A stretch of 64,000 bases of DNA from Octopus bimaculoides (lineage: Eukaryota), in the NCBI RefSeq assembly GCF_001194135.2, contig NC_069004.1:2008388-2072387 (forward strand), given 5' to 3'. Below are positions 7,510 through 30,981 of the stretch, piece by piece (within the stretch, counting starts at the first letter, position 1; each line of letters begins with the position of its first letter). The notes below the pieces were generated by a model. It did not search any database. It saw only the letters and a program-made list of their open reading frames with translations, and was not told where the DNA came from. Position numbers and translations under genes: made by a program.

Positions 7510-7820
7510 NNNNNNNNNNNNNNNNNNNNNNNNNNNNNNNNNNNNNNNNNNNNNNNNNNNNNNNNNNNNNNNNNNNNNNNNNNNNNNNNNNNNNNNNNNN
7601 NNNNNNNNNNNNNNNNNNNNNNNNNNNNNNNNNNNNNNNNNNNNNNNNNNNNNNNNNNNNNNNNNNNNNNNNNNNNNNNNNNNNNNNNNNNNNNNNNNNN
7701 NNNNNNNNNNNNNNNNNNNNNNNNNNNNNNNNNNNNNNNNNNNNNNNNNNNNNNNNNNNNNNNNNNNNNNNNNNNNNNNNNNNNNNNNNNNNNNNNNNNN
7801 NNNNNNNNNNNNNNNNNNNN
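7510..7820. other. Assembly gap (311 N) flanked by poly-A on both sides
   Basis: N run seen directly. Confidence 0.99.
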
Positions 7821-9177: not shown

Positions 9178-9250
9178 TCAAACGGGTCCATTCTTCATTG
9201 ATGCTGTTATAGCCTTTTCATATTTTTCCATAGCTTCAATTGCTTGAGAC
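9178..9250 (-). CDS. PPP6R3: PPP6R3 terminal coding exon 25 ([23 protein letters not shown])
   Basis: ttttgcAG acceptor, TGA at 9180-9178. It ends in NGPV, as does human PPP6R3 (from memory). Confidence 0.92.
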
Positions 9251-12200
9251 CTGCAAAACAGAAAGACCAAGACAGGATTAAACCGTTAGCAATTATACTG
9301 GCCATAACTGGCCGCAATATACTGTGTTTTATACTAAAACTGACCGGCTCCAACCTCTCACAACTACCCTACAATGTCATTCTAAAAATATACAATCACA
9401 TCATTGAAATCTTGGAGCTAAAAGACAATGCAGAATTAATTCCAAACAATGTGAATGAATAAGCAATATATTTCAGTAAGAAATCTGAATGTTAAAGGGT
9501 CAAGCTAAATAATTCTAATTTCGGTACAAGGCTAGTAATTTTGAGGGGGGGTGGGGAATGTTGATTACATCAACTCTGTTGATCAGTGGGTACCTATTTT
9601 ATTGTTCCCCTACCCCACCCCCACCCGAAAGGATGAAAGGCAAAGCTGACCTTGCAAGAATTTGAACTCTCAATGTAAAGAACAGCATTTTGTCAGGTGC
9701 AATAAGGAATAATTCTGCCAGTTTGCTACTGTTTAAGCTAAATAAATTTCCATCAAATATTTCTCTCACTACAGAGGAGATACATAGGTAACCCCTATTA
9801 CATATGGGGGGAGGGTGAGAGTGGTTGAGGAGATGTCTGATGAGGAGTCTCTCCTAACACCACGCAAACTTATTCCGTTCATAATTAATTACCTGATATT
9901 TTCTATCAAATTAGATTTGGAAGATTCACTGTTGCCATCTGTATTGGAAGTGGTGGACTTGGCAACAGAATCATCGTTAGGTTTGGATTTATCTTCACTA
10001 ATTCCTTCTGGGTCTTTATCATTACTGGCAGTAGAGACACTTGTTGTAGCAACACCAGAACATTCTGATGTAGCAACACTGGAACATTCTGTTGTAGACA
10101 CACAGGATGAACTTTCTGTTGTAGATACACTGGGAACAACGGTGGTAGAAGAAGACGAAGCCTCTTCAAAATTACTTGGTTTAATAAGACCAGCTGAACT
10201 CAGAAAACTGAAATAGAAAAACATACAAAAATCATCTGAAGAGAAAAAAATTGTTTTAAATGATACAACAATGTTAGTCGCTTTTGTTTGTTTCTTTGTT
10301 AGGTAATGCTGATAGTGGTTTCAAACCATTAAATACAGAATCAAGACAGGATCAAAAGAGAAAGAAAAAAATAAGCCAGAAGAGAAACAAACTTTATCAG
10401 AAAAATTTTGATAGCTACATTGTGTTTGTTTGAAATTGTGTTTAAATTACAAAAAAGGGTTCTAAGAATCATTGACAAATATTGATATTTTAAGAAGAAA
10501 GAGAAGTCATTTACCAAACTACAGAAATATGTCACACTTTCTTACATTTTGCTGAAATGTGCATCGTTCAGATTTCAAGTTTGAATTTCATACAAGAATT
10601 TAAGAAGAAAATCAAAGCTTTCTTTGAGACTGCCTTAAAAGCAGAGCGGTGCTAGATATAGTATTTATCAATTGTAATCAAGGTCTCGAAATTGCTGTAT
10701 TTGTTGCATGGGGTGAGGGTGCTAGCTTTCCCAAACTCAACTCTAGTTTTTTTTTGGCTCAGCTAAGTACGAAAACTCGTTTTATTAACCTTCTCACTAT
10801 TTCATTGTCTGAGATTAAGATTGGAAATTAAGTAAAACTTTAAAGATTTAAACTTAATACTCATGAGTGCTTGGTGACCTCATTAATGCTGGTGCCCCTC
10901 CCCAACAAAGAAAGAGAGAAAGCACCCAGTCTGCTCTGTAAAGTGGTTGGCATTAGGAAAGGCATTCTGCTGAAGAAATCATACCCAAGCAGACAGTGGA
11001 GCTGAGCACAGCTCCCTGGCTTGTCGGTTCCTGTCAAAATGTGAAACCCATGCCAGCATGAGGGGGGGGGGGGAAGGATGTTAAATGATGATGATGATGC
11101 AAAAGCAGTCAATATCTACACCAAGAGAAGTGTAGTGATAGTTAAAGGTTAGATTTTAAATGTAAAGCAAATGTAAAATATGTCTAGATGAAAATACATG
11201 AAGACAACTGTTTTAAGTTGTAGAAAAGAAAAAGAAATGGCAGGAGCCTTTGTCATGCATACTTAATATAGATTCAGAACGAACACTAAAATGCAGGAAG
11301 GTGAGCAATTGGTAACAAACAAGGCAAAAAAGCAATCTTACCGAAAATAAAGAAATGGAAAGTTACGGGTATATGCCAAAGGTCAACGATAAATGGAGAG
11401 AGTGACTTTTGGAGTACTTGTTTATCATTGCAGATGAATATAGAGAGAACAATTTTAAATGATTAGAAACAAAAACACTTACACATGATGAAGAGGTTGT
11501 ACATTGATATTGAAAAACATAACATTGCCACATGCATTCACCAGCACATTTGTACATCAAAAGCACACTGACATGCATAAAGCAAAATATTCATTTTAAA
11601 AATAATTTTTTTGTGAAAGTTTTTATATTCCTTATCAATGTCGTGTATTCGTTTTTTTTATTCAAATTTAAAATTATCGTGTCACAAATCCAAAGCTATT
11701 AGAGGCATTTTAGAACACTTTGCACTTACTGACTACAGTCAGATTAACCTCAATGTGTTTTTTTTTTCCTTTTCTTCTTGAAACCAAATTGACAAGGCAC
11801 AAAAGGCTCTGTATTTTGGGAGATGTAAGTAAAAATGCAATATTAAAGAATTTCTCAAAGATATTATCAATACAAAGAAATCAGGGATTGAAACTGTGTT
11901 ACAGTTTCTGCTCACCCCACACTATACACCATAGAACTCAAACCCAACTTATTAGCAGTGACTTACCAATAGCAGAGCTGGATACAACTGAAGAGAAAAC
12001 AGTTGTATCAGGTGTAACTTGTTAGTCAAGAGGGAACTATACACATTAGGGAAGAAATCGCTCCAAAAGATTACAATTAAGAAGTCTGAGAATGAACAAC
12101 TAAATTCATTACAACAGAGCATATTAGTATATAAGCTACATCTTTGAAGCTAAAAACTTGTGTAGATTGTCATAGAAGAGGAACTAGACTCATGTTAAAA

Positions 12201-13960
12201 AACAATTTTTAAAAAGACATTAAAATCCATGGGGAAATAATGTTTGTATAAATCTGATACAAGTTTCAAATAAAGAATGAAAACAAAGAAATGAACAAAT
12301 CAGAAATGTTGTCCTATCTGGATTGTAACCGGTAGAATGTGCTAGCTGAAAGCAGTGCAGGAGAAGCAGTTTGCACCTAAAAGAACGGTGCAGTCAGCGA
12401 AAGCTTTCAAAGAGGAAAACTCACTTAAAATTCTGATAAAGCTCTTCATCAGTTTCAAAATGTAACCTTTATTCAGAGGGAGAGAAAAAGAAAAGCTATC
12501 TTGACTCATTGCTGAGTGAAGGGAAAAAAAAAATTAAATGAAATGAAATACTGCAATCATGAGCAAAAGATTTCCTTAGACACAGAATGTTGGGGTTATG
12601 TTTGTAAGTAACTAATGAGGTGATTGTCATAATGATTTTGAAATAGGAAACCTCCAGATCCATCAATAGATTACAACAGAATGTTAATGAACGCCGCTAG
12701 CTTTTCATCAGTAAGTGATTACAGGGAGATTCTTTGCGCATAAATTATGGTTTGACTTAAAGACAAACAGACACTTAGATAGAGTTACTCGATTAAGGAA
12801 AATAATGATAAAATGGAGAAGGAAAAGTGGCAAAAACACATATCTATTTTTAAAAACATTTGAATTGTGTTGAGTGACTATGTTGGTCAGATGGATAGCC
12901 TTAGACGTCCAGGGGATAAGAGGAAGAATAATTAATGAAAGAAACAGAAAACTGAAGACTATTATCAAAAGTCTACGACAGGTTTGCAGGCGATCATCAT
13001 CAAAGAGTTTTGGTGAAGAAGTGATGTTCACAAAGCGATTCTAAAGAAGAATATACCAAAGTGGGCTTGCATTGCTATCTCTAGATTTACCAGTTGAATT
13101 TGGCATTGTAAGCTAACAAAACATTTGTTAATTTTACAGTGCTGCCACTGCTTGATGGAGCCAGTTGTTCCTGTATCTTGGCCACAGACCCAACATAGTG
13201 CTGATGTCAGAATAGAAGCTACTTCTCTGATAGCCTTTCTTTTCATTTGGTCATTCAAGCTCTCTTTCAGGCAAAGCAAACTCCCAAGAATTACCTGCAT
13301 TCACAATTGCTATGATCTGATGATCCAACAAGGAAACATTTACATGGTTGTGTAGCCTGGTAAAAAACAGCAATGAAATCTCAAATTATATCCTAAGACA
13401 CATTGAATAATGTATGTCTGAAATGATAAAAAGCTGCAACTGGAATGTCTCTATTATAGCCCTAGGCCAACCAAAGCCTTGTGAGTGAATGAAGTAGATG
13501 AAAGCTGAGAGAAACCTGTCGTGTATGTATGTGTGCACATATACATGTGGGTGTATATGTTTGTGTGTACCTTTGTCTTGACATTGTGTAATGGTTGTAA
13601 ACGAGCATCCTTGTCATACAAGCAGTGTAGTTTTAGTTTCCAATCTTCTGTGGAAAATATGTCTGGCCCTGGGGAAATATTATCTTGCTTGGAAAGCAGA
13701 ATAGGGTTGGTGACAGGGAGGTATTCATTCAGTCATAGAAAATCTGCCTCAATAAATTCTGTTTGACCCTTGCAAGCAAGCAAAAGGGACGTTAATGATG
13801 ATAAACGAGGATACCTATAATTATTGTGAGAAGACTTGTCACACAGAGGGCAGTATTTAGAGCAATTCGTTTTCTTTTTCTCAGAGTTTGATATGACTTG
13901 GTGTTGGGTACAGGGTCTCTTTGCTATTCCACCACCTCTAGTGTACATACATAGGTACAT

Positions 13961-14043
<83 letters not shown>

Positions 14044-14849
14044 CAGAGAGAGAGAGAGGGGGACTGAGGTGGTTTAAAATTTGGATCTCAAGGTCGAATG
14101 TAAAACAACACCAGTCTAAATAGTGCAGGGAATGGTTCAGGTGCTAATATACGTCACAGAACATGGGTGAGGGAAGTGAAGGGAGTCACAATTTGTACTT
14201 TCATAAGCTCATTACTCATTATTCCAACAAGATGGAGATGACTATACCTTTCTTGTGAACAGTTTACTACTTTTTCTGCCTCAGAGTCGTCACTTGAAGC
14301 AATTGGGTCTGAGTTAGCTGACTGGTTGCTATCAGATTGACTGCTGTCATCTTTAGTAGACCATTCTTTATTGGTAACATTTTTTTTGGTATCACCACTG
14401 TTAAAAAACAAACAAAATAAAACATTTTAAAATACAAATATGAAATTACCAATGCTGGAACATTACAACCAACATCACCAGAAACTACACCTCCAGCTTG
14501 GCATCCAATTTTGGTTTGTTTACATCCATCTAAATTGGTGGTTTGTCAAAAAGGCCCAACAGTATAAGTACCAGACGTAAAACCTAAGTAAAGGGAGCGG
14601 GGTCCGTTTGATTAAATTCCTTCAAGGTGGTGCCCCAGCATGGCCACACTCCAATAACTGTAAAAGTAAAAAAAAAAAAAAACTGCAAAGGATAAAAGTA
14701 AACACAAGAAATAGAAGGATGTGTACCTCCAAAGTGCATCTTCTTTAGAACTTTTTCCATTTTCATCTTTTGCAGCAGTTTCAACTGTTCTGGTTTGAGG
14801 ACTTTTTGGAGAATCTGAAACACAGAGTTTTGGAACATCATGATAATGG

Positions 14850-14882
<33 letters not shown>

Positions 14883-17800
14883 TACATCATGTAGAGTTTA
14901 TACATATACAAGTAGGATGGCTACTGGAGTCACACATGACTGGAAGACAACCAGCCAGGTTTACAGCATAACAAACGGTTACCAGAGTTATAAAACTATA
15001 AAACAGACAGACAAATATACAACAATGAAATAGAAGAACGATTAAATAAATTCAAATCTAATTTTCTCAAGTAAATAATAATGGTAGCACATAAAAAACA
15101 AGCACTACTGAAAAGAATACGTCCACCTTTGCTAAGGTGGGGGTAATAATTATTCCAATATATAAATAGATACGTACTCTTATCTTCACAGCCTGAACTA
15201 GACACAGTGTCACCAGTATCCATAGCTATAGGAGAGCTACTCCGAGGAATTCTGGAAAACAAAAGAATTACATTATTGGATGACAGGAATTAGTCAATAT
15301 ATCAGGTTTAAACATGGCTGTGTGGATTAAGAAGTTCATTTTGCAACCACATCACTTTGGGTTCAATCCCACTACATGGCAGCTGAGTGGTGTATAGTAC
15401 TGAAGGCGGTGGCTTTATGCTAGACGGACATAAACATGTGTCTTGCAATAGAGGTGAAATATGGCCACCCCAGTTGGATTTATGTCATTAATAAAGACAT
15501 ATATTTCTTGATGTTCATACATTTGGATTCTAAAGAGTAGCTTGATAGAAAAAGTGATGAAGATTTTTAGAACACCCATTCAAAGTATTACAGCAACATG
15601 GTCAAAGAAGGCAACAAATTTGTCCGTACCGCTCCAAAGAGGAATTAAAACTAGAAAAGTCAGCCCAGTTATTTTCTGACATTTTCAGATCAAAGTTAGC
15701 CCACTTTTGATCAGGAGTCTCACTTCCTACAAGTGCTGTATCCCAAGGGGACGTTTCCATTGCTGTAAGAGAAGAAAGTAAAATTATAGCAATTTTACTC
15801 CAAAGACAGAAACCTTGTAAGTTGAATTTGTTAATATCAAATGCAACAACAGAAAAATTGGTAGAGAAATTATTGATGTAAAATAGTCAGAAATACTTTG
15901 CAATTCAGTAACAGAGACCAACAGAACAGGTACCAGACTTAAGAAATAAGCGCTGGGGTCAATTTATTCAACTTAAAGCCTTCGAAGTGGTTAGGGTTAG
16001 CACGGCTGCAGTCCAATGATGGAAACAAGTAAGAAATAGAAGATCAACGTACAACCAAGCTGATCAAAACAATTTGAAATCTCATCAACCAGCATGCTGA
16101 ACATATTTAAGTGAATTTGAACAGGGGCTTAGCAATAGCATCTTTCTCTGTTGATACATAGCCTAGAAGAATAAGGATCAAAGAAAACTGACCTTCTACA
16201 TCGACATCCATCTTCTCTTGAGGCTGTTGTAGAATGCACTTTGGAGAGTCTAATTCTTCATCACTGTCGGTGTTGTCCTCTTCCTCTTCCTGATCATCAG
16301 AACCAAGACTGTCGGTTGACATACTACAACCATGGAGAGAAAAGAAACAAATTGAGAACAGGGCTGGGCAGTGTTTCACAACTACAAGACATCTATTCCA
16401 ATAAGGAAAAGTATAGATTATTAGAGAAGAGAGAGAGAGGCTCACATGACTAGGAGATATTAAGTAACCTAGCTGCTTACCCAGTTGGCTGGACAGGTGA
16501 ATTTTCAAAGAGAATAACTTCCTTTTTTTCCCAGATTTCTTCATCACTATCATTGTCATCAAACTGCTGGATTCGTTCATTACAGGCTTGTTCAAACATG
16601 GTGGCATTAGGGGCCTACAAACAATAGAAAGTGCAGGTGCAGCTATTAGCAAGATAATGCATGTGACTTTTTATCCTTCTTTGCTAATGATGATCACACA
16701 GTCACACAAAGATGGAGTAAAAGAACAACAAAAAAGTGTATTAAGCTGACACTCAGGAAAAATGGAAGACGTCTTTAGCATTTTAAGCCTATACTCTTCT
16801 GCAGAAAGGATGGATGAGGAGGGACAAAAGATGGCGAGGAAAAGAAAACAAAAGGTGTCTGAGTTAAACAGCCAAGGCATGCTGTATATCTGAATAGATT
16901 GAAAGTGTTGCGTGACAGACATGACTATGTCTGAGTTGGATTTTTTAAAGAACTTTTCATCTTTTCTTATTAGTCTTGTATGCTCATAGAAACCATTAGT
17001 CCAGTAACATTTCAGAACCACCTCAACTCTATTTATGGAATGAAATGACGAGAGAATGTTGTGTCTGGATGTGCTTTGGATTGGATTGCAAAGAATCATG
17101 GGATAATTGGTGAGAGAGAGAGGGGGGGAGGTCTATACTTACACTATCTTCATCAGCCCTTATATTGAAGTCAATGCTTGAGATCTTCTCATTAAATGTG
17201 GTGCTGCAGGAAACAAAGAAAGAAGCAAACACTGAATTGCTGCTACAATTTATTCACAAGTAAAAGACGATTTCAGCTACGATTATATACTGCACATTGA
17301 TGTAATAAAAGTTGTTATTTGACCATAACAATTTACACAAAATATTAAATGAGCCCAACTTTGCATATATAAACAGAAATTATTTTGGAGGAAAAAGTAT
17401 CTTCCATGCCATCAAATAAAATAGAAAAAGAAATATCAAGAGAGAAGGCGGAGAATGACCACTCACTCAATTTTGCCATCTTGGTCAGCAAAATCATGTT
17501 CATTGAAGCCAAATGTATCAATGAAATTAGATGTCATCTGTAGTTGGTAATCAGAGAAGGCCTGTTGATAGCAAAAACAAATGTGAAAAAAAGGTGAATG
17601 AAATAGAAGAAACTAATCTAGAGAAGTAAAGCTCAATTTTAGCAAAACTCATAGAAACCAGTGACAATGATTTTCAGTCAGTGATAATTAATTTCATCCA
17701 ATTTAATGCTTTAAGCACTTCCTGTATAAGGCAAATTACAGAAGCAGTTTCTAAACTCTCAAAATTAAAATTACTGTAAGATATCCAAAGTTTTAAACAG

Positions 17801-17941
17801 AATACAGCAGATGTAACTGATGCAGCTTAAAGTATGACAAAAAAAAAATATTGTAATTGTGGATTAAGAGGAACATCAGAGAAATACAAAATAATACATC
17901 TTAAAATGTAAATGCATGCAGACAAAAGAAAATTACATGAC

Positions 17942-17972
<31 letters not shown>

Positions 17973-18022
17973 TATATATATATTTATATATATATATATA
18001 TATACATATATATTTATATATA

Positions 18023-18059
<37 letters not shown>

Positions 18060-21000
18060 CACATGTATATATAAATATATATACACATATGAATGCATTT
18101 ATATATGTATGTACGTACACACATATATATGTACACATGTAACGTTTTCAGAAGAACAAATTTATTTTCAAATATCTAGTTTATAGTGCATGTCAGACAT
18201 TAAAAGAGACAAAATACATGCAGGTCAACTAGACATGGAAGAAAAAAAAAACAGTTCTTAAAAAATCTCGATACAATACCTCAAACATTTAAATAATTTA
18301 TTAACAATAAGACCTGCTGTGGTAAAAAGATAACACTAAAAAAACTATGTTATCACTAAGTTATACTGTTACTTGTGAGCACTAGATGCATTTAAGGTCA
18401 GACTAATTAAAATTACAAAACGTATATATAGTTGTATAACATTCTATTAGTAACATGACACTGATAGTCTCAAGAGTACATCTTAATATTTGACTAGAGC
18501 AAAATTTTAAACTGTGGCCATGTCATTAGCTTAGCAATCTTCTATATTTCTTCTTTATCTAACAATTTGTATTCCGATGGAACAAGGTCATGCAGTCTTG
18601 TTTTCGAAATAAACACCTGGCTACAATAAATGTTATGATACATCCAAAAGATCCAAATGATGCTCTGGTCTGATAACATTTTTATCTTATTTCCCCTTTC
18701 TCAATAAAACAAGCAATCTCTATTTCTCTCTCTCTCTCTCTCTCTTTTTTAAATAAAAAAAAAAAACAGCACAACCCATCTATGATTGCAAATCGGCTGA
18801 AAATGCCAGCAAATATAAAGACCTATACAAGACCTACATAAACTATGAGCCGAATTGGTTTTATGGCAGTTTTTTTTTTCTTTTTTAATGCAAGCCCATG
18901 TCGCACAGATCTGAAATATATTCCAGTTTGTATATATACCATGTTGAAAGGCAATTTACTGCAGTATTCATCCAGAGATATGAAAATTGCTCCAATAGTG
19001 GCTAGCAAGAACGCAATACTAGTGAATGTTTATTCATTGTTTCCTAGATATTGGATGTGACAAATCTCCTCTAAGCATGTCATTGAATGTGAGTACATGC
19101 CATTGATAAGACCCAACAAGGCCAAAATGCACCTGGTGTTCCCATTCGCCACTGCTGGGGTGATTTATGTTCCCCTCCACTATAATGTTTTTAAACACAG
19201 CATGTCCATAAGAGATGTTATCTCTAGATAAATACCACAGTAAATTGCCTTTCGATGATGCAATGACATTAAGTTGGTTATTTAAAAAAATAAAAATGTA
19301 TTTAGTCTCGTAAAATAACAGCATAAATCATAAAACCTCAAATACAACTCTATACTACATTCCGCAGATGGTCACTATATTTCAAGCTGATGTTGAAGAT
19401 ATCACTAAAACTGATGGTTGAGCTGTTACATCCTGGCTTGCCAAAATGATTTGGCATTATAAAGTATTTGACAGCAAAATCTAAACTATATTGTGAATAT
19501 ATTAATGTCATCAACATTGAACAAACTTTTACACAGATATACAGTTTAATAATTATACTGCAAGACATTCCATATCTCATTATTTTCAGAACTATATCAA
19601 CAATACAATAAATTTTCATTACCAGTAACTTCCATGATACAATCACCATATCAAACGAATCTGCTGGGAAGAAGCTATATAAACTCAAAACAGGTAGCAC
19701 AGTTCTTGCCCCTTGGTTTGCCAAAATACTTGGCCTTATAACAATTCTTTCTAATTAGTACCTAAGACCAGTAATTTAAATGAAGGACTGATTACACTGA
19801 CCCCAGTACTAGACTGGTATTTTTATTTTATCGACCCCGAAAGGGTGAAAGGCAAAGTCGGCCTTGGCAGTATTTGAACTTAGAACCTCAAGGAATACTG
19901 CTGAGCACTTCATCCAACACACGACTCCACCAGCTTGCTACCTTATTCATTGTATAACTGACACTCCGTCGCTTACGACAACGAGGGGGGTTCCAGTTGA
20001 TCCGATCAACGGAACAGCCTGCTCGTGAAATTAACATGCAAGTGGCTGAGCACTCCACAGACACATGTGCCCCTTGTATCTAGTATGTAGTATGTTGTAT
20101 CAGAGAGAGATTCGGTGTGACAAGGCTGGCCCTTTGAAGTACAGGTACAGCACTACTCATTTTCCCAGTTCAGTAGACTGGAGCAATGTGAAATAGAGTG
20201 CCTTGCTCAAGGACACAACACATTATTGGGTATTGAATTCACAGCCTTACCACCGTGAGCTGAATACTCTAACCACTAAGCTATGTGCCTTCATTATATT
20301 AAATATATATATATATATATATATATATTTTTAGAGGCTCTGCTGAAGCTATAAGGTGTTACTCAGGCACTAACCTGAGTCCACTGCATCTTATAGCAGA
20401 AACAGCTATAAGCTAATGAAGTTCATAATTGTTTATACCTTTGTCATCTTGTTTTCTTTATATATGCATATATATGTGTGTGTGTGTGTATATATATATA
20501 TATGCAATCATATATATAATTATCCTGGGGTCTGTCTAAATATGTCTCAATAAGAGTAATATGCTGCAAAGAACGAAATATATTTTCATATACAGACCTG
20601 TTTATAAACCTTCATGTGCACAGGACTGTGTGGACAACACAGATTTACCCCATTTACTAAACACTAAAATCAGTCAAACGAAAACAGTAACTAGTGCAAC
20701 AACTGAAGATGGAAAAAATGAGGGAGGGGGGAGGAGGTTTGGAAGTAAGTGAACACACAGTGACATGAGTGATGATGGTTGAGAATCATGTGGAAAGTAC
20801 AAGCTATGAGACTAGGATAATTTATAATATAGCCTGCCCTCCACTTTACCAGCAATAATAACATGACATTAGACAGATCTGAGGGCAGCAAGACCATTAA
20901 CGTGGTGAGACAAGTGTCCACTACTTACTTGAGAATAGTTGGGTTTCTGAAAAAAAAGCAATGTCGATGACAAGCATCAGAAGAAAGTCGTTAGAAGACA

Positions 21001-24000
21001 GGTGAGAAAACTAAGGTGAGAATAATTATAATAATTAGGATTTCTGTCTTAGGTAGAAAGGCAATGCTGACTCTGAGCAGAACTGAATTCTAGACATAAA
21101 CACATAAATACAGCAAAGTATTAAAGCCTGACACTTAGCAGAGCCAACCATCCATTCACTGCATGTAGTTCTTCAAAGCCTGTGAATTTCCTTCACAATT
21201 CCATAAACCTGAGTAACAGAATAAGCTAACTACAAAGCAGATTTTTTAAGACATTCACAACGAAACACCTCTAATGGATAAGATTTAAAGCAGTTGGAGA
21301 AGTTGATCAACATTTCTCTAAAAATTTTCTGTACAAAATATATGCATTAAAACATTACTTACTTGAGAATATAATACATAACAGTTTTAATACAATATGA
21401 AATATTGAATAAACTGTAATACAAACAAGAAACAGTTAAATAAGGTAGAAAAAAAAAAAAGTAGTTGCTTGAGGCATGCCTGTGGGGTTAATTAGCTTGT
21501 TTCCCATCTAAGTGGTTTTAGGTTCAATCCCATTGCAGGGCACTTTGGGCAAAGAGTTTCCAGCTACAGCCTCAGGCTGACCAAAGCTTTGTGAGAAGAT
21601 TTGGTAGGTAAAATTTAAAAGTCCATTACGTGTGTGTGAAAGTGCTCGTGTCTCGTTATCAAGGCTTCACATGAATTACAAAGGTGTACCCTCATACAGT
21701 AAAGTAGGGATTTTTACCTTAATAATTAAAAAAAAAAAAACCCCAGGAAATTTACTCCCCATAAATTAGCCATGAAGGTTTCAGTATCTGGACCCTGACC
21801 CTATTGAGATAAGGGCTTCAAGCGTTTTTAGTCGTTCATACCAACCCCAATACTTAATCCAGTACAGCACTTAGTTTACACAGAAGTTGAAAGCAAAGAG
21901 ATGCAAAGCGTAACTACTTGGAATATTTGGGTCTAAAAGGAAACGGAAAAAAGCAGAAAGAGGTGACTTACTTGTTGCATTACAGCATCTTGGTTAAAAG
22001 GCAAATCTCTGAAGTCAGTGTCATCATCTTCACTACTTGAATGGAGAGGATGACCTTGAACCTACAAATCACACACACACACATACATAAGTACTTGAAA
22101 GTAACCAATTCTTTTACATATATGCACGCTTCTATAATATCATTTGTATGCAAATTACTAAATTACTCATTTCCTAACCTAAACGGCAAACATGTGTGGC
22201 CCAGTGGCTAATGTTTGGTACTCACAATCACAAGATTGTGGTTTCAATCCCTTGTGCTCTTTAGTAAAACACTTCCTTTCATGTTGCCTCAGTCCACTCA
22301 GCTGTAAATGAGTAACCCTGCAGTGAACTGGCATCCCATTTGGAGGAAAATGTTGTGATTTCGGTCATCTATGTGCCATGGAAACCAGGTACCTGTGAAT
22401 TCGAGGACTTAAGACAGTAAAGTCCAACAGACTTGGTTCTTGCTAACCAGAACACTACCAACAACAAATCTGATGTACAGGGTGTCCATAAATAATCTTT
22501 ACAACTTCTACAATTTTATTGTATCTATTGTAAAGGTAATTTATGGACACCCTGTATATTGTTTCTTTGTTTTGTTTTTTAATCTTTATTTACACATACC
22601 TGGGTATGAGTGCATTCAAGTCTGAATGGTAATGAAGTTTGTCTCTTAGCAATGAAACTCAGGGTTCTTGGACAAGTGTCTTCTACATCATCCTCAAGTT
22701 GAGCCTAACACACACCTAAATACATTTAAACCATATACACAAGATTGAGTTACTAATACATACCAATTCAATTGTATTTTGTTTGTTGGTCTCAGCAAGT
22801 GTCGAAGAAACAAAAGTCGTCCATTTATTTCTATATTCTTCTGGAATCTCTGAAATACAAATAGCATTCTTTACTATGTACATATAATTGTGGAAGTTTG
22901 TATTTGTTTGTGCAACCGTTTGCATAATTATACAAATATTCCATATAATTGTACAAATGTGTGAACGAGAAAGAGAATTTCCAGACAGTTCAAAAAACAC
23001 AACAGTAAAAAAAATTACACACACGATGATGGCAATTTCTGCCTGTCTGAAGATTATGGGGGAAAGCCACAAGTGGCTCTGCAATCCAGTCTTTGATGCT
23101 GCAGCACTTTTCTTCCTGCCTACATTTACCAATTTTAAAGTGAGAAGCAGCCCATACAATCTGATCTTGCTCTTTAGATTTGTAAGTCAGAACGCAGGGA
23201 CTCAGTAGGCTCAGGCAGTAGAAAAGTCAATAAAAGCCCTTACCTTTTAAGTATTCTTTAATTAATTCGCTGTTTTCTCCTTTTTCTATACATTCAGTAA
23301 TGTGATTTGCTATTTTAGTTAAATGTCCCATATATCCTCGACGTCTGCCTCCAATACGATGTCTGCAAAAAAAAAAATAAATAAATAAATAAAAATAACA
23401 TTTATCATTTTGAGATTTCAACATTTTCATTTTTTATTTTTCTCTCATTTCGTGTCATTTTCCATGCTGCTCTGATTTGGAAAGAGTCTATGACATAACA
23501 CAGTTTCATGCACCTAAACTTAATGTATATCTTCTGTGAAGCCAAATATTTGTATCACTTATTCCATATAATATTCAAAATCATCATCTAATGCCCACTT
23601 TTCCATGACTGCAGGAGTTGGATGGAGTTTATTTATTGGTTGGATTTGAACACAGAACATAAAGACCCAGAAGAAATGTCACCAAGCATTTTGTCCGATG
23701 CACTACCGATTCAACCAGCTTGCCATGTTTTATGCAAACATTATAACAACAAAAAAGCAAAATGTAAAACAAGAAAACATTCGAAGGTCACTTACTCGTA
23801 TTGGTCATTCTCTTCCCATGAATCTAGAATTCTCTGCATCAAATTACATTTAATAAATATCTGAATATAAAACAAAAGAAGAGTAAATTATGATTTCATA
23901 CAGAACTGGCAAGGTTTTTTATTATTTGATTAGCTTACTAATTAATAGAACAGTGATTATAAATAATAAAATCCTTATGGAGTTGATGAAATAAAATACC

Positions 24001-26150
24001 AGCTGAACACCCTTCAAAATTGTTAGGCCTTGTGCCGAAATTCAGGGCAAAATGCTTAGCAGCCGTCAGTTTTCACATTCTGAGTCCCCCACTCCACCCC
24101 CACCCTGAAATTGCTGTCCTTGTGCCAAAATTTGAAACCGTCATCATCATTATTATTAGGATGATAATTCAATAGAAATGGAACATTTTTGGGGGTTCCT
24201 GGAAACATGGGTGTTTTGGTCATCATCTTTAGACAACCCTTATTCAAGGACCTTTTGAGTGAGAGGGGTTATTTGACCTGAAGAAATTTCTAACTGGACT
24301 CTACCTACAAGGCCATGATATGATGTCAGCTTGTCAAAACTTCTGGCACTGGATATTTCAATGTTTTACAAAGTGCAAAAAAAAAAAAGAAGCTAAAATT
24401 CAACAATGTGGATTATCTTTAAAACAATTAAAAAATCTACTTACTTGTTCTAAAAGAGGATGTTCCTTTCTGTTATCAATTTCTGTAGGTGAGTTGTTAA
24501 GTATTAAATATATGCATTGCTCTACTTGACTATGTAAGAAATTGTTCCATATATATTTGAAATATAAATCCTGAAAGAAGAAATGATAAAATCTAAGAAA
24601 AAACAGATGCTGAGAAAGAGAAGGGAGGAGATGCAATCGCACAGGTAAAATGTTACTTACCAACATTACACCAATGGTCCCAGAATTTGCCAATTCTACA
24701 TTGACCTCATGAGAATTGGTCTGAATTAAAGCAGTGATCAATTTTGTTATTTGTAACCTAGTATTTCCCAGAGGTGGTTCAAGTATACCAATAGTGGTTG
24801 GCATAGCACAGTACCGGGGCTGAAAAGGAAAAAAGGGAAATTATATAGAACATCACCAGATCATCAACAAGAGTAATTTTATATTGGCTAAACACACACA
24901 CACATTTCTTCTTCTTATCACTCTGTTGGTTATGACAAAAAGTGTTCCAGTTGATCCAATCAAAAGAGCAGCCTGCTTGTGAAATTAACATGCAAGAGGC
25001 TGAGTACACCACAGACATGTGTACCCTTAATGTAGTTCTCAGGGAAATTCAGTGTAACACAGAGTGTGACAAGACTGGCCCTTTGAATTACAGGTACAAC
25101 TCATTTTTGCCAGCTGAATGGACTGGAGTAATGTAAAATAAAGTGTCTTGCTCAAGGACACAACATGGTATATCAATCCAACAGATGGTAAAAACTGTTC
25201 ATGACAGGGGCAGAAGCTAACAAGCTTTAAGTGACCCTCACCTTAGGTGGATTTAATAAAAGTGAATGGAAGTCCTTTATTCTGGGAGTTATAGCATACA
25301 GAACATGGTTGACACCTTGTGTTAGATTTTCAATTTCTAAACTAGATCTCTGGTCCACTTCTCCTTCATATCTACAAGGAAAGACAAAAGAACACAATTA
25401 AGTATTTTCAAAAGTCACAAAAAACTGTAAAAACAGCAGCTTCAAAAATTCACATCATATCCTAAAACAAAACCAAAAAAAAACTAAAAAAACATGCATC
25501 TACAAACAGATTAACCTCACTTAAAAAAAATATTTTGGTACTTATTCTATCAGTCTCTTTCAACAAACTGCTAGGTTATAGGGATGTAAAAAAACCAGCA
25601 GCATTTGTCACATGGTAAAGGGGACAAACACAGGCACAAAGAGACAAATGCGCGCGTGTGCGTGTGTGTGTGTGTGTGTATACACAATGGGCTAGCACAG
25701 TTTCCACCTGCCAAATTCACTCATAAGGCATTAGTCAGCCCTGGGGCTATAAGTAAAAGATATATATATATATATATATATAGGTGCAGGTGTGGCTGTG
25801 TGGTAAAAAGCTTGCTCCCCAGCCACATGATTCTGGGTTCAGTCTCACTGCGTAGCACCTTGGGCAAGTGTCTTCTGTTATAGCCCCAGGCTGATCAAAG
25901 CCTTGTGAGTAGATTTAGTAGACAGAAACTGAAAGAAGCCTGTCGCGTGTATGTATGTATATTTGTGTTTGTCAACCCACTCCATCGCTTGACAACTGAT
26001 GTTGGTGTGTTCATGTCCCTGTAACCTAGCGGTTCAGCAAAAGAAACCAACAGAGTAAGTACTACAGTTACAAAGAATAAGTCCTGGGGTTGATTTGTTT
26101 GACTAAAGGCAGGGCTCCAGCATGGCTACAGTAAAATGACTAAAACAAGT

Positions 26151-26192
<42 letters not shown>

Positions 26193-29100
26193 GCACATAC
26201 ACACACATGTATATGGGTATATGCCGTCCAACATTTTCCTCTAGTTTATTACAGGTATGGAGACACTTGAGACATGCACTAAATACATGGCAGGTTATTA
26301 AGCATGGTCAAAGTAAATGATTCAAGTAAGAGGGTAAGTGGGGTCGGGTGGGAGGTGGAAAATACAAATAAAATTACACTTTCTTGATATCAAGCAAAAT
26401 CTGTACGACAAGAAGACCGTTGACGATAACTGATTCGTTCTTTTCTCCGTCCAGTATGTTGTTTAACAAACGACCGATAACTGGTTCACTGAAAAAAGCA
26501 AAATAAATAAAAACGGTTGTTTATACAAATCTGTTGAAGAAACCAAAGAACTACAGACATTAGTCATTCATCTAACTCAATATACATTAATCATTAATCT
26601 ATATATGGTAGTGTGAGAGTGCATAGCCTAGTGGTTAGGGTATCGAATTCATGATTGCAAGATCGTGGTTTCAATTCCTGGACTGGGTGGTGTGTTGTGT
26701 TTATGAGCAAAACGCTTCGTATCACGTTGCTCTGCATTCACTTCGACATCTGATGTGTGGTACATCATTACACCTATTCACGCAGCATCAATTTGATGGA
26801 GGAAGTGAGCTTAACGTACAGCAGGAACATATAATCAGTACAAACAAATCATTTGCACAGGTTCTTCAGTAAGAAATTGCAGAACTGTCTTTCTCGGACT
26901 ACAAGAGAGTACCATCATGTATGCTAGTCATTCATCTATACACATGTCCATGCGTGACATTTAGTAAATATTACTTTTTTTTTTTTTTTGTAGTAATTGA
27001 ATGAACTCAAAATCACAAGGCTGTGAGTTCAATTCCTTGACAGGGTAACAAGGCAATTCTAATCATGTTGCTCTAATCTGTTCAAGTGAAACGACTAATA
27101 GCAAGCCCAGACGCAGGTTCCTTTTCTTCCGTCTGTTTCATCCAGGGGTGTTTCCACTGGGTCACATATAATGGTTTGATCATTTGGACTAATGAAAGAA
27201 AGGAACAATGGCAATTCATATGTCAAAGAAAGTAGTGATCACAACCAGTGAAGCAGTGTGAACCAATAATCGGAACCGGTATGCAAAGAGGGTTCAGTTG
27301 AGAAACTAGTCACCCCTATAAATATTAGATTTTGCAAACTGGTATACTTACGATTCTAAAGTTGCCAAGAGGGGATATGGTTGAGGACAATCCTGAATCT
27401 GAGACGGTTGTTCTCGACCTAATCGGACAATATCACAAAGAAATTGAGCTGCATTTGTATGAAACTGTGGAGAAAAATAAAAATAATAAAAATTAAAATA
27501 ATGAAAAATGAACAATGAAAATATATAAAAGGAATGAAATAGTGCTATACATGATTACTACCAGCTAGTAAACAAAAAACAAAAAATTAAATATTTGAAT
27601 TTTATGCAACTTTTTCATTGTAATTGCAAATTCAAAGTTCTAATCCTACCTCATATTAAGAAACGATTATCTCCCTTCTTACGTCTGCTTTCCATGCTGG
27701 AATGGGTTGGACAAGTCATCATGGCCAAAGTCATTTGTCATTAGGAGCAAACATTTGTACACATCATATGGCTGGGGTTTCTATGGCTGAATGCCCTTTC
27801 TATTGCCAACCACTTTACACAATGTACTGTGCACATGTTTTCATGGCATCAAAATTTTTTTTTAAATCTAAACTCCACCCTGAACCACCTGAGCATGGAA
27901 ACACCATTTCCACAAACAGGAACAGTGTTTGGCCACCCGGTTATTGATACGATAAGAACCATACAAACAGCAGATCTGATAATGGATTTTGAAATCCAGA
28001 AGCACACACACACACATACAGCAAATACAAAAAGTCACACACACACACACATGCATAGTAGATACAGAAGGGGAACACACAGACACACAACAGAGAAACA
28101 ACAAAGGTGGAAAATTACAGAATGGCGAATAAAAGTAACTCACATCTTCTTCAATTGATGGAACAACTTGATCCACGAGTCTTTCCACCAGTTTTTCTTC
28201 ATTCAACCACTGAAATAGAAGAGAAAAGGAAATATAGACACAGAACATTTGCTTTAAATTTAAAGTTGAAATTCACTTGAAAATTTGGACCAAGGGAGTT
28301 TAGTGACAGAGTTCAATGATAGAGTACAAGAGATAAAATATTATTCATGGTTTTCCACAACACAGTTTGGATTCCTTGGAACTATTTCATACATGTCTTT
28401 TATAAAGGTAAAAAGGCCAAAAATGTTAATTTGATCTTCCTATACAGTCTAAGCTTTCATCTACACACACACACACACACTCTCTCTCAATAATCAACAT
28501 CCTGATAGATTTGCAAACTTTGAAAGCAACAAGTTTAAGTGCCTAGGTCACCCTTAACAGCTAATGACTAGTAAGACATCTCCAGTATTGGTACCACCAT
28601 AAAACATGCCTAGTTCCTTTTCGTAGACAGTAAGCTTAAAATGTCACCCTGCTTAACACTTTCATCTGGTTATGAAGTACATTTAGCTGAGTTCATTCGA
28701 TTCAAAGCAAATGGGCCAAGCTTCCAACCAAAGAAGAACACATTCTATTAACACACTGATTCCCACTTGGTCACTGCTTATCAGAGACAGCATGATATAA
28801 AGATTTTTCAGCCAATGCCAAATGAAAGGGGCCAAATCCAATATATAACAGTACTTAAAAAGAAGTACTGGCATTGATTTCGTCGTAGTTTAATGTCTGT
28901 TTTCCATGCTGGCATAGGTTGGACGGTTTAAGTGGAGCTGGTAAGGCTAGGGCCCACACCAAGCGGCACTGGCATGGTTTCTACAACTGGATGCTCTTCC
29001 TAATGCCTAAATCGTTTGAGGCATGCTCCAGTATGGCCACAGGCCTATGACTGAAACAAGCAAAAGATAAATGAAATGGAAATAATAATATAAGGTTAAA

Positions 29101-29865
29101 AAAAGAAGCTGACTGACCTCTATCATTTCAAACTTTAGTTTTGTAGATTCTATACAGGTTATCAATCGTAACAAGAGATCCACCATTGCAGATGTACCAA
29201 TATGTGTCAGTAAGGTTCCAACAAAGTCAGATTTTGATTTCAAATATTTAAATATCTGGGGAAAAAAAAATTTAATTAAAAAAATAAAAATCGAAAATTT
29301 GCTGAATTAGTTTCAATTTTCAAATATATTTTGAGAGTATTACGGAATGCAAACATGAATGGAAATCTTCAAATGCAAACAATACTTACCATCTCACTTT
29401 TTTTAACTGTAAGAAGGCCTATCACTTTACTGACAAAGCTAGCCAATAAGGGATTAAGAGGGCCCTTCATCTCCAAGAACCCATATAATTTGTTTATATA
29501 AACACTATCTCCAGTTAGGCAGTCATTGATCTGAGTTACATCACATGTCAATACTTCACAGCATGTATTTGGGTACCTTTTGGACAAAGAAACAAAGCAT
29601 TAGAATCAGTTACTGTTTAAATAGTTGATTAGAGAGACATCTAAATAGTTCAAATTTAAGGATGTTTTAATCTGAAGCAAGACGTCTTTTTGTACGATTA
29701 TATCAACTGTATTTACTTGCAAATAAGTTGGACTAATTTATACTTGATTTTAAGTGAAGAAATTGGGGTGCGACATACATGGGGCAAAACTAACAATATG
29801 AAGGGGAAAAAAATTTATACCAAGGTTTAACATTAAATTAGGGGGTTAACTTATACATAAGAAAA

Positions 29866-29909
<44 letters not shown>

Positions 29910-30884
29910 CAAAAGAAGCTGGAAAATTTTTTTTGGTATTATTTGTTCATCATGCGTACGAACAACCATGCTACATGGCAGTGAAACATGGGCTGTAACT
30001 GCTGAGGACATACGTAAGCTCGCAAGGAATGAAGCCAGTATGCTCCGTTGGATGTGTAATGTCAATNNNNNNNNNNNNNNNNNNNNNNNNNNNNNNNNNN
30101 NNNNNNNNNNNNNNNNNNNNNNNNNNNNNNNNNNNNNNNNNNNNNNNNNNNNNNNNNNNNNNNNNNNNNNNNNNNNNNNNNNNNNNNNNNNNNNNNNNNN
30201 NNNNNNNNNNNNNNNNNNNNNNNNNNNNNNNNNNNNNNNNNNNNNNNNNNNNNNNNNNNNNGCTTGTGCGGGTGGCACATAAAAGACACCATTTCGAGCG
30301 TGGCCGTTTTCGTGCGGGTGACACGTAAAAGCACCCACTACACTCTCTGAGTGGTTGGCGTTAGGAAGGGCATCCAGCTGTAGAAACTCTGCCAAATCAG
30401 ACTGGAGCCTGGTGTTGCCATCCGGTTTCACCAGTCCTCAGTCAAATCGTCCAACCCATGCTAGCATGGAAAGCGGACGTTAAACGATGATGATGATGAT
30501 GATTACATATGGTTCATTTGCTTATAGGAATCACAACCCTGGGTCATCCATGGGGCTGGGCCCTTAATGGATGTGAAACCATTGGTCACTCTATGACCAG
30601 ACTTATACTCAACTGAATAAGAAATACACTATTGCTCTACGCTTTAGAGTGTGCCTCTTTTTCTGCTATATGATACAAATATATATATATATATATAAAA
30701 TGAGGTTATATTATACTGGTAGGTAAGAATTCTAAACATTTTAAAGAGTGCAGTATAAATGCAGGCAACCAGAAACGTAATTTGGCAAATGCTATTACTT
30801 CATTAAAATACTTCAGATATAAACACTTTAGAGAAAACAAGAAATAAATCAACATGGAGAGAGGGAGGGAGAGAAAGAGAGTGA

Positions 30885-30981
<97 letters not shown>

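Follow-up and report, generated by a model that had tools for sequence, protein, structure and literature searches.

PPP6R3 is a SAPS-domain scaffold subunit of protein phosphatase 6 (PP6). In vertebrates, its gene carries an 18-nt neural microexon (VastDB DreEX0057914; zebrafish exon 23; mouse chr19:3,459,747-3,459,764), which shows the canonical UGC/UC layout of Srrm4 targets and is included developmentally in the brain. Deletion of this microexon in zebrafish leads to a smaller larval thalamus and pretectum. According to the literature, short exons that are conserved and tissue-specific are for the most part neural, and the eMIC domain has been traced back to the bilaterian ancestor. The independent gain of a microexon in the same gene has been termed "type II convergence" (bioRxiv 10.64898/2026.09.05.749416).

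Analysis of a 64,000-nt stretch of the Octopus bimaculoides genome (hereafter the window) revealed a cassette in the PPP6R3 gene that reads cag/AAACCCAACTATTCTCAA/gtaagt on the minus strand, in the context ...ttctaacgactttcttctgatgcttgtcatcgacattgcttttttttcag/AAACCCAACTATTCTCAA/gtaagtag (slashes denote exon boundaries), with no stop codon. With its canonical AG and GT and a length of at most 27 nt, it belongs to the class of cassette microexons (3-27 nt). It encodes KPNYSQ, which corresponds to residues 539-544 of XP_014789872.1, and the translation of the 27-exon model that includes it is identical to this RefSeq protein (O. bimaculoides isoform X1). The product of the model also matches the Pfam SAPS family (E = 3.5e-93). 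The host intron is 4.4 kb long and both flanking-exon boundaries are in phase 0; as the length of the cassette is a multiple of three, the reading frame is preserved. The preliminary description, made from the letters of the sequence, had proposed an 18-nt in-frame PPP6R3 microexon on the minus strand, placed in a phase-0 intron between ...AVMQQ and AFSDYQ..., and all of these details were confirmed. Its coordinates and those of the surrounding features are collected in Table 1.

Table 1. Features of the PPP6R3 locus and of the microexon, in window coordinates.
Feature	Position	Strand	Description	Basis
PPP6R3 coding region	9178..34903	-	Whole coding region, 27 exons; ATG 34903, stop 9180-9178; isoform X1	
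Exon 15	21972..22061	-	Upstream, constitutive; ends ...AVMQQ, donor CAA/gtaagt, phase 0	
3' splice-site region of the microexon	20947..21011	-		Sequence, measured features
Nearest upstream AG	21011-21010	-	AG-free zone of 64 nt	
CUAAC	20994-20990	-	Branch A at 20991	
Distal UGC	20976-20974	-	Within the conserved block CUGAUGCUUGUCAUC	
Proximal UGC	20960-20958	-		
U8 tract	20957-20950	-	Microexon acceptor	
Acceptor AG	20948-20947	-	Microexon acceptor	
Microexon	20929..20946	-	AAACCCAACTATTCTCAA (KPNYSQ), exon 16 of 27, 18 nt	Sequence and match to the model protein
5' splice site of the microexon	20914..20928	-	With conserved extension GUAAGUAGUGGACAC	Alignment and BLAST to the cuttlefish locus
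Conservation island	20905..20961	-	57 nt around the microexon	O. bimaculoides versus Argonauta hians, 94.7% identity
Exon 17	17467..17561	-	Downstream, constitutive; cag/AFSDYQ, phase-0 acceptor	

Both splice forms are represented in the annotation. In O. bimaculoides, three RefSeq proteins include KPNYSQ (XP_014789872.1, X1; XP_014789873.1, X2; XP_014789875.1, X4) while the fourth, XP_014789874.1 (X3), differs from X1 solely by its deletion; in O. sinensis, X1, X2 and X4 likewise carry the insert and X3 skips it (XP_029650348.1 and others). The expectation that ab initio annotation would miss the exon is thus not borne out, because the evidence-based RefSeq models of O. bimaculoides already contain it in X1, X2 and X4 and skip it in X3. 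The microexon is therefore already known: taken as an exon, it contributes nothing that public annotation of this species lacks. The inclusion form is documented here through Gnomon models. At the transcript level, all full-length contigs of cuttlefish (more than 50; one run was traced, to a whole-animal library) and of a second octopus species skip the exon, and no annotated or Logan-assembled cuttlefish transcript with the microexon was found. For two skipping-form transcripts the source was traced: one is a Sepia library made from the whole animal, the other an octopus meta-transcriptome whose tissue is not stated, neither of them a neural sample. Isoform X3, which skips the exon, gave no record when looked up exactly, and queries of 68 and 162 amino acids gave almost no matches in a large protein collection that does contain full-length relatives but whose word index is insensitive to short queries. 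A search of the literature on cephalopod microexons found nothing beyond a preprint with PSI data for O. bimaculoides tissues.

Comparison of a 4.7-kb O. bimaculoides query with Argonauta hians aligned three segments only, namely exon 15 (84.7% identity), the 57-nt island and exon 17 (94.3%). The microexon itself is identical at 18 of 18 positions in O. sinensis and in Argonauta, third codon positions included in the latter; the Argonauta protein model may be homology-built and does not constitute independent transcript evidence. In the cuttlefish Acanthosepion pharaonis, the orthologous 2.3-kb intron holds an unannotated cag/AAACCATCCTATTCCCAA/gtaagt encoding KPSYSQ, which differs from the octopus exon by two synonymous substitutions and a single codon change from Asn to Ser and keeps its splice sites intact. 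Searched against 62 kb of cuttlefish sequence, the island gave a single significant match (E = 8e-12). These alignments indicate that the microexon and approximately 40 nt of flanking intron are under purifying selection, the remaining intron being free to diverge. Outside cephalopods, the scallop and limpet introns showed no microexon, and none of 218 non-cephalopod isoforms has an insert at the QQ/AFSDYQ junction. Conservation in orthologous introns, to which the preliminary description had looked for confirmation, thus holds for Octopus, Argonauta and cuttlefish and fails in scallop and limpet. From these comparisons, the microexon emerges as a coleoid-wide innovation, found both in octopods and in the genome of a cuttlefish.

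Taken together, the RefSeq isoforms and the conservation support the initial view of an in-frame, alternatively spliced 18-nt cassette. The sequence is almost certainly a genuine alternative cassette microexon, exon 16 of 27 of PPP6R3, present in RefSeq, conserved in coleoids and recorded in both its included and skipped forms. Several other origins or functions were considered and rejected. When the region 20400-21500 was compared with the rest of the window, its matches were limited to a (TG)n microsatellite (20457-20523) and a 19-nt chance match, which speaks against derivation from a transposon or repeat. Nor is there support for KPNYSQ having arisen by duplication of AFSDYQ, since inspection by eye matched only around half of the last 12 bases. 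No RNA family was found in an Rfam search of the window, and a conserved RNA structure around the microexon was discarded, the consensus fold reaching only -2.4 kcal/mol with no compensatory pairs.

We then turn to the signals that may govern inclusion. In O. bimaculoides, the closest AG on the upstream side ends at -64, two UGC motifs occupy -14..-12 and -30..-28, the branch A of the CUAAC is at -45, and the region from -40 to -4 contains 76% pyrimidines, the tract being composed of U8 and CU-rich sequence. These measurements agree with the branch point at about 45 nt, the AG-free zone of about 65 nt and the two UGCs proposed at the outset. The donor, CAA/GTAAGTA, had been called perfect; this is accurate for its intronic portion, while position -1 is an A rather than a G. 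Across the four coleoids, the AG-free zone measures 64, 67, 133 and 59 nt and a UGC is found between -30 and -40, the 5' splice site reading GUAAGUA[G/A]UGGACAC. The only UGC of Argonauta lies at -40 and that of cuttlefish at -31, at bases that do not align with the Octopus UGC. The proximal UGC (-14) and the CUAAC (-45) are restricted to the genus Octopus and are missing in Argonauta and cuttlefish. The best-conserved intronic elements are the U tract with its CAG and the downstream GUAAGUA[G/A]UGGACAC, with no UGC at a fixed position.

We consider it an even chance that this real alternative microexon is widely included, or that its inclusion is governed by different factors or in different tissues (such as PTB-type, Nova-type, muscle or gonad programmes), the UGCs being incidental. 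Three of the four RefSeq isoforms include the exon in each Octopus species, so that inclusion may be common, not rare. By its cis features, the exon cannot be told apart from the constitutive exons of PPP6R3: the 64-nt AG-free zone stands at about the 80th percentile among the gene's own acceptors, and of 25 other acceptors 10 have at least one UGC within -40 and two have at least two. The prominence of the U tract with CAG and of the extended donor, over any fixed-position UGC, among the conserved intronic elements also fits such a reading. The skipping of the exon in all full-length contigs from cuttlefish and the second octopus species, however, argues against high ubiquitous inclusion, and the retention of a skipped, frame-preserving exon across the octopus-cuttlefish split suggests regulated use.

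A neuron-specific inclusion, in which the eMIC isoform of Srrm234 would bind the upstream UGC while non-neural tissues skip the exon, is a plausible reading that we hold somewhat short of evens. With the same reserve, the Srrm234 isoform could aid early recognition of the 3' splice site of an exon too short for ordinary exon definition. The cis layout in Octopus corresponds to the published code, with a long AG exclusion zone, a near UGC and a strong CUAAY (PMC8797185), and the AG-free zone of 59-133 nt and the UGC at -30 to -40 recur in all four coleoids. The conserved flanking introns are typical of regulated microexons, and the two traced skipping transcripts, from the whole Sepia animal and the octopus sample of unstated tissue, are compatible with restricted inclusion. 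The mostly neural use of conserved short exons, the bilaterian age of the eMIC domain and the presence in vertebrate PPP6R3 of its own neural microexon with a canonical Srrm4 layout point in the same direction. Several observations weigh against neuronal eMIC control: the signature is not distinctive among the acceptors of the gene, only Octopus has the proximal UGC and the CUAAC, with the cuttlefish UGC at non-aligned nucleotides, and the 60 nt upstream of the microexon contain no UCUC or CUCU repeats (the SRSF11-type element). The acceptor is moreover of average strength, unlike the weak acceptors of fly eMIC exons. As read from the sequence, the cis signature thus appears compatible with Srrm/eMIC regulation, without being distinctive within PPP6R3 and with partial conservation. 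Among the trans-acting factors that may drive inclusion, the neuronal eMIC isoform of Srrm234 would be the likeliest individual candidate, at somewhat less than even odds.

The expectation under chance was derived from splice-site scores. By position weight matrix (PWM), the acceptor of the microexon scores 8.9-9.1 bits and the donor 8.6 bits, about the median of the real sites of PPP6R3. At these thresholds, the window contains one further AG..GT pair of 3-51 nt, a 51-nt decoy of equal strength located in the same intron, 420 nt from the microexon, and simple arithmetic on the site counts of the minus strand leads one to expect about 2.3 of them in 64 kb. In block-shuffled introns, a frame-preserving, stop-free pair arose in about 2% of trials under the strict threshold and in 18% under a laxer one. 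The splice-site pattern alone sets the microexon apart from chance only weakly, and the case for a real exon therefore comes from annotation and conservation. For two control decoys of equal or similar strength within PPP6R3 (21413-21363 and 11987-11967), an alignment was obtained in the near relative O. sinensis only. A chance splice-like pair copied into gene models by error and devoid of function is thus very improbable and largely refuted by conservation: a sequence-only expectation of roughly 0.02-0.2 such pairs per PPP6R3 intron set and the equally strong decoy nearby would allow it, but the exon is fully identical in Argonauta inside an otherwise unalignable intron, cuttlefish keeps the frame and both splice sites with synonymous changes, the decoys lack comparable conservation, and RefSeq holds a skipping/inclusion isoform pair in two species. 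Splice-site and UGC patterns cannot by themselves tell real microexons from decoys; here, conservation did so.

Regarding the protein, the AlphaFold2 (AF2) model puts the insertion point about 30 residues beyond the final helix that it predicts with confidence in the SAPS solenoid, as anticipated by its initial placement just after the SAPS helical domain. The pLDDT exceeds 90 up to about residue 507 and falls below 50 for residues 508-553, after which the model predicts a helix at 544-561. KPNYSQ falls within a linker of low confidence, probably disordered, directly before this predicted helix, the low AF2 confidence around the insert making the position of the helix start a weak statement. 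In the identity profile, the insert separates SSSEDDDxDFxDxPF..QQ from the block starting with AFSDYQ, which are among the best-conserved parts of PPP6R3 across Bilateria. No solved structure covering PPP6R3 was found, nor any structure or interaction map of this segment in any PPP6R protein. Recognition of the exon would rely on its conserved flanks, namely the U-rich tract with CAG and a UGC 30-40 nt upstream in an AG-free zone, as well as on the extended 5' splice site and the UGGACAC after it. Inclusion inserts KPNYSQ (KPSYSQ in cuttlefish) without breaking the frame; the insert would shift both spacing and composition where a conserved linear motif or helix begins, with a tyrosine and an S-Q site added. 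The altered start of the motif may in turn adjust one of the protein-protein contacts of the PP6 holoenzyme.

In sum, this alternative microexon is an ordinary one that annotation already records, and its evolutionary story is modest. Compared with the RefSeq PPP6R3 isoforms, the exon, the residues and the junction are the same and nothing differs at the sequence level; the database entries give no information on tissue, regulator or conservation, and the cuttlefish copy (L012:22996-23013) is absent from annotation. The vertebrate microexon DreEX0057914 shares the gene and the 18-nt length. It lies, however, in the C-terminal tail (...TAVFK/.../EE...) and starts and ends inside codons, whereas the octopus exon is at QQ/AFSDYQ in phase 0, and its sequence, (R)VLKSY(R), has no similarity to KPNYSQ. 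The VastDB entry hence does not supply the PPP6R-family microexon that had been sought at QQ/AFSDY, and homology between the two exons is rejected on position, phase and sequence. At most, the octopus and vertebrate microexons evolved independently in the same gene. That coleoids independently acquired a neuron-enriched, eMIC-dependent PPP6R3 microexon, paralleling the vertebrate 18-nt exon of the Srrm3/4 type, is conceivable, although we lean towards doubting it. If so, two large-brained lineages would have tuned one phosphatase holoenzyme by parallel microexon gain, and a neural octopus exon would be a clean case of one gene gaining microexons repeatedly.

Like the microexons dependent on eMIC/Srrm234 and SRRM3/4, the octopus exon is no longer than 27 nt, keeps the frame and has conserved flanks. 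Its extended AG-free zone and upstream UGC, neither distinctive among the acceptors of PPP6R3, resemble theirs, as do the CUAAC of Octopus and the strong donor, a trait of mammalian targets (PMC8797185). It differs from them in having no UCUC repeats, an acceptor that is not weak, and a proximal UGC and CUAAC that are not conserved outside the genus. In other bilaterians, the same PPP6R3 junction hosts a tandem-acceptor event that yields isoforms with or without AFSDYQ. Both events use the same intron-exon boundary, the same 18-nt, six-residue step and the same conserved motif; the tandem acceptor is an alternative 3' splice site within the downstream exon and removes residues, whereas octopus adds a separate exon. 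The inner CAG of the tandem acceptor has changed to CAA in Octopus species. The junction of the octopus exon is thus one that varies by exactly 18 nt, in the opposite direction, in many other animals, and parallel gain, if real, would have placed the cephalopod exon at a site already varied elsewhere in Bilateria. This makes the segment of PP6 regulatory subunits around SSSEDDD...QQ/AFSDYQ a candidate tunable element, of interest for binding. For the study of microexon evolution, the points that may be of use are the coleoid-wide gain, its independence from the vertebrate microexon and the variable junction that the octopus exon shares with the tandem-acceptor event.

The 18-nt microexon KPNYSQ of PPP6R3, the gene for a scaffold subunit of PP6, is confirmed as real, conserved and alternative, and is already in RefSeq for O. 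bimaculoides. The gene was probed by tblastn with a human PPP6R3 sequence, which gave about 19 minus-strand exons from the ATG at 34903. The splice sites of the model were refined by hand, and a full-length search then retrieved the cephalopod PPP6R3 proteins. The SAPS domain was recognized by Pfam (E=3.5e-93). Runs of N, corresponding to assembly gaps, occupy 7510-7820 and 30067-30261, the latter within a PPP6R3 intron.

Features of the PPP6R3 locus, in window coordinates
Feature	Position	Strand	Remarks
PPP6R3 CDS, 27 exons	34903..9178	-	translation identical to XP_014789872.1 (isoform X1)
Exon 15 end	21972	-	...AVMQQ then gtaagt, phase 0
51-nt pseudo-exon decoy	21363-21413	-	same intron as microexon; in-frame TAA stop
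Microexon, 18 nt, KPNYSQ	20946..20929	-	exon 16/27 of PPP6R3
Exon 17 start	17561	-	cag then AFSDYQ, phase 0
AFSDYQ 18 nt	17544-17561	-	also at L014:13016, L015:18995, L012:24570 (Acanthosepion pharaonis) and L002:22236
Second PPP6R3 cassette exon, 42 nt	12425-12466	-	(R)-13 residues-(N); skipped in RefSeq X4
21-nt frame-preserving AG..GT pair	11967-11987	-	good scores; intron downstream of 42-nt cassette exon; in no isoform

On the minus strand (21015..20923), the microexon and its surroundings read ...ttctaacgactttcttctgatgcttgtcatcgacattgcttttttttcag/AAACCCAACTATTCTCAA/gtaagt. Since both flanking boundaries are in phase 0, the 18-mer keeps the reading frame. The preliminary description had given the exon sequence, its phase-0 insertion between ...AVMQQ and AFSDYQ, UGC motifs, a branch point about 45 nt upstream and an AG-free zone of about 65 nt, and all of these agree with our measurements: UGC lies at -14 to -12 and at -30 to -28, a CUAAC places the branch A at -45, and the closest upstream AG ends at -64. 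The donor described there as perfect, CAA/GTAAGTA, is so for its intronic bases, while position -1 is an A instead of a G. A (TG)n-type microsatellite at 20457-20523, 400 nt downstream of the microexon, resembles other repeats in the window. Within the window, the microexon region is non-repetitive.

The expectation that annotation would miss this exon proved wrong for the public, evidence-based RefSeq set. KPNYSQ is included in isoforms X1, X2 and X4 of both O. bimaculoides and O. sinensis (...AVMQQKPNYSQAFSDYQ..., cluster members of the top match), and the six residues are missing from X3 in both species. In O. bimaculoides, this deletion is the sole difference between X1 and X3. From the working of the Gnomon pipeline, not from reads, we infer that the placement of an 18-nt exon required spliced transcript support. 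KPNYSQ also occurs in the Argonauta hians protein model, which is possibly homology-built and so does not count as independent transcript evidence. In isoform X2, the residue pair KV is missing where exons 8 and 9 meet, a 6-nt difference (26378-26383 / 25371, minus strand). The 42-nt cassette exon is kept in Argonauta; its cuttlefish version is longer, about 57 nt as estimated from alignment gaps, a length that fits the 19-residue gap between the two cuttlefish isoforms.

Splice sites were scored with two PWMs, one for donors built from human frequencies and one for acceptors derived from the sites of PPP6R3 itself. The microexon obtained 8.9-9.1 and 8.6 bits, approximately the median of real PPP6R3 sites. 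At those thresholds, a scan of both strands of the window returned one further AG..GT pair of 3-51 nt, the 51-nt decoy, for a chance expectation of about 2.3 such pairs derived from minus-strand densities (84 acceptors, 36 donors). The acceptor of this decoy is stronger than that of the microexon, and its donor context, TTCTCAA/GTAAGTAG, is near-identical. When PPP6R3 introns were block-shuffled, a frame-preserving, stop-free pair appeared in 2% of trials under strict thresholds and in 18% under laxer ones. The sequence of the window alone is not enough to establish the reality of the microexon. Lax scans of the orthologous introns yielded many candidates per species, among which KP[N/S]YSQ alone was recurrent.

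It is cross-species conservation that settles this reality. In O. sinensis, most of the host intron can be aligned at about 84-91%, which we take as the roughly neutral level for this pair of species. Against a 4.7-kb query, Argonauta hians gave just three aligned pieces: exon 15 (84.7%), a 57-nt island around the microexon (20961-20905, 94.7%) and exon 17 (94.3%). All 18 bases of the microexon, including third codon positions, are identical across the three octopods. The orthologous 2.3-kb intron of the cuttlefish Acanthosepion pharaonis carries cag/AAACCATCCTATTCCCAA/gtaagt, encoding KPSYSQ (L012:22996-23013), with two synonymous changes, one Asn-to-Ser codon and both splice sites intact; this copy is the sole significant match of the island across the 62-kb locus (E=8e-12). 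The alignment of orthologous introns proposed in the preliminary description has found the splice sites kept in octopods and cuttlefish, with the 18-mer unchanged in the octopods and altered at three codons in the cuttlefish. The core common to these four coleoids (two Octopus species, Argonauta and the cuttlefish) is UUUUUCAG/exon/GUAAGUA[G/A]UGGACAC. As controls, the 51-nt decoy and the 21-nt candidate aligned to O. sinensis only. The KPSYSQ exon was found neither in the two annotated cuttlefish isoforms nor in the Logan contigs of that species that were inspected, and the microexon region gave no Rfam match and no conserved RNA fold.

Among 218 PPP6R3 proteins, a set that takes in about 80 isoforms of ten non-cephalopod clusters, an insert between QQ and AFSDYQ was present in octopods only, and the 2.4-kb introns at the orthologous position in Pecten maximus and Patella vulgata gave no comparable exon candidate. 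Given this distribution, the microexon looks like a coleoid innovation. AFSDYQ itself is missing from 34 of the 218 proteins, in scallops, oysters, apple snail, Lingula, hemichordates and amphioxus. In most species, exon 17 opens with the 18 nt GCCTTCTCTGATTACCAG, ending in an inner CAG acceptor; the initial 17 bases are identical from Octopus through Pecten and Patella, and the inner CAG is changed to CAA in both Octopus species. The inner CAG, combined with isoforms that lack exactly six residues, points to a tandem acceptor as the route of AFSDYQ loss. With this 18-nt tandem acceptor and the coleoid microexon, the QQ/AFSDYQ boundary is an old hotspot, minus 18 nt in other animals and plus 18 nt in coleoids. 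The AFSDYQ exon of PPP6R3 was also seen, with the same boundaries, in an 864-nt ENA metagenome contig (L001) from an invertebrate, probably host DNA within a microbiome sample.

In an AF2 model based on 30 homologues, the helical solenoid is confident as far as about residue 507, pLDDT is <50 over 508-553, and a helix is predicted with low confidence at 544-561. This drop in confidence puts KPNYSQ (residues 539-544) in a linker, probably disordered, just after the SAPS domain, the placement initially proposed. The insert lies at the start of a 17-residue segment, and residues 501-570 rank among the best-conserved in PPP6R3 across Bilateria. We infer that the six added residues, which bring in a Tyr and an S-Q, would alter both the distance and the chemistry between the two halves of a putative conserved PP6-scaffold interaction motif. 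No PPP6R3 structure or interaction map covering the insert region was found.

Regarding regulation, eMIC exons are, in their published cis code, preceded by a long AG exclusion zone and a strong CUAAY branch point, their pyrimidine tracts are long and rich in UCUC, and UGC lies near the 3′ splice site; eMIC targets have weak 3′ splice sites in fly and strong donors in mammals (PMC8797185). The octopus microexon shares several parts of this code, and the AG-free zone is long in all four coleoids (59-133 nt), each of which also keeps a U-rich tract, an extended donor and, 30-40 nt upstream, one UGC. However, the 64-nt AG-free zone stands at about the 80th percentile among acceptors of PPP6R3, and UGC occurs within -40 in 10 of the 25 other acceptors of the gene (two or more UGC in 2/25). 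Neither the proximal UGC nor the CUAAC is found outside the genus Octopus: Argonauta has UGC at -40 only, and that of the cuttlefish, at -31, has arisen at different bases. Moreover, the 60 nt upstream of the microexon contain neither UCUC nor CUCU, and its acceptor is average in strength, not weak. Indirect hints of neural inclusion come from full-length skipping-form transcripts in a whole-animal Sepia library and an octopus meta-transcriptome, tissue unstated, and from published conserved tissue-specific short exons, which are predominantly neural. PSI values by tissue for O. bimaculoides, from an eight-tissue set analysed with vast-tools, belong to the work in bioRxiv 10.64898/2026.09.05.749416. 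The features conserved in the four coleoids are compatible with eMIC control without demonstrating it; a neuron-specific eMIC mechanism is a reasonable hypothesis, and to neural, eMIC-dependent inclusion we would give slightly less than even credence.

An 18-nt neural microexon has also been described in vertebrate ppp6r3 (VastDB DreEX0057914), and zebrafish larvae without it show a smaller thalamus and pretectum and an acoustic-response phenotype. Its sequence, aGTGTTGAAATCGTATcg, encodes (R)VLKSY(R) (supplement of the preprint version), and it corresponds to exon 23, whose layout is canonical for Srrm4 in both fish and mouse. It is located in the C-terminal tail, not at the QQ/AFSDY junction for which the preliminary description had proposed a check of VastDB. 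As the octopus exon differs from DreEX0057914 in position, phase and sequence, orthology between the two is excluded. If the octopus microexon is neural, the pair would represent type II convergence, reported to be common in the 2026 preprint that uses this term (bioRxiv 10.64898/2026.09.05.749416).
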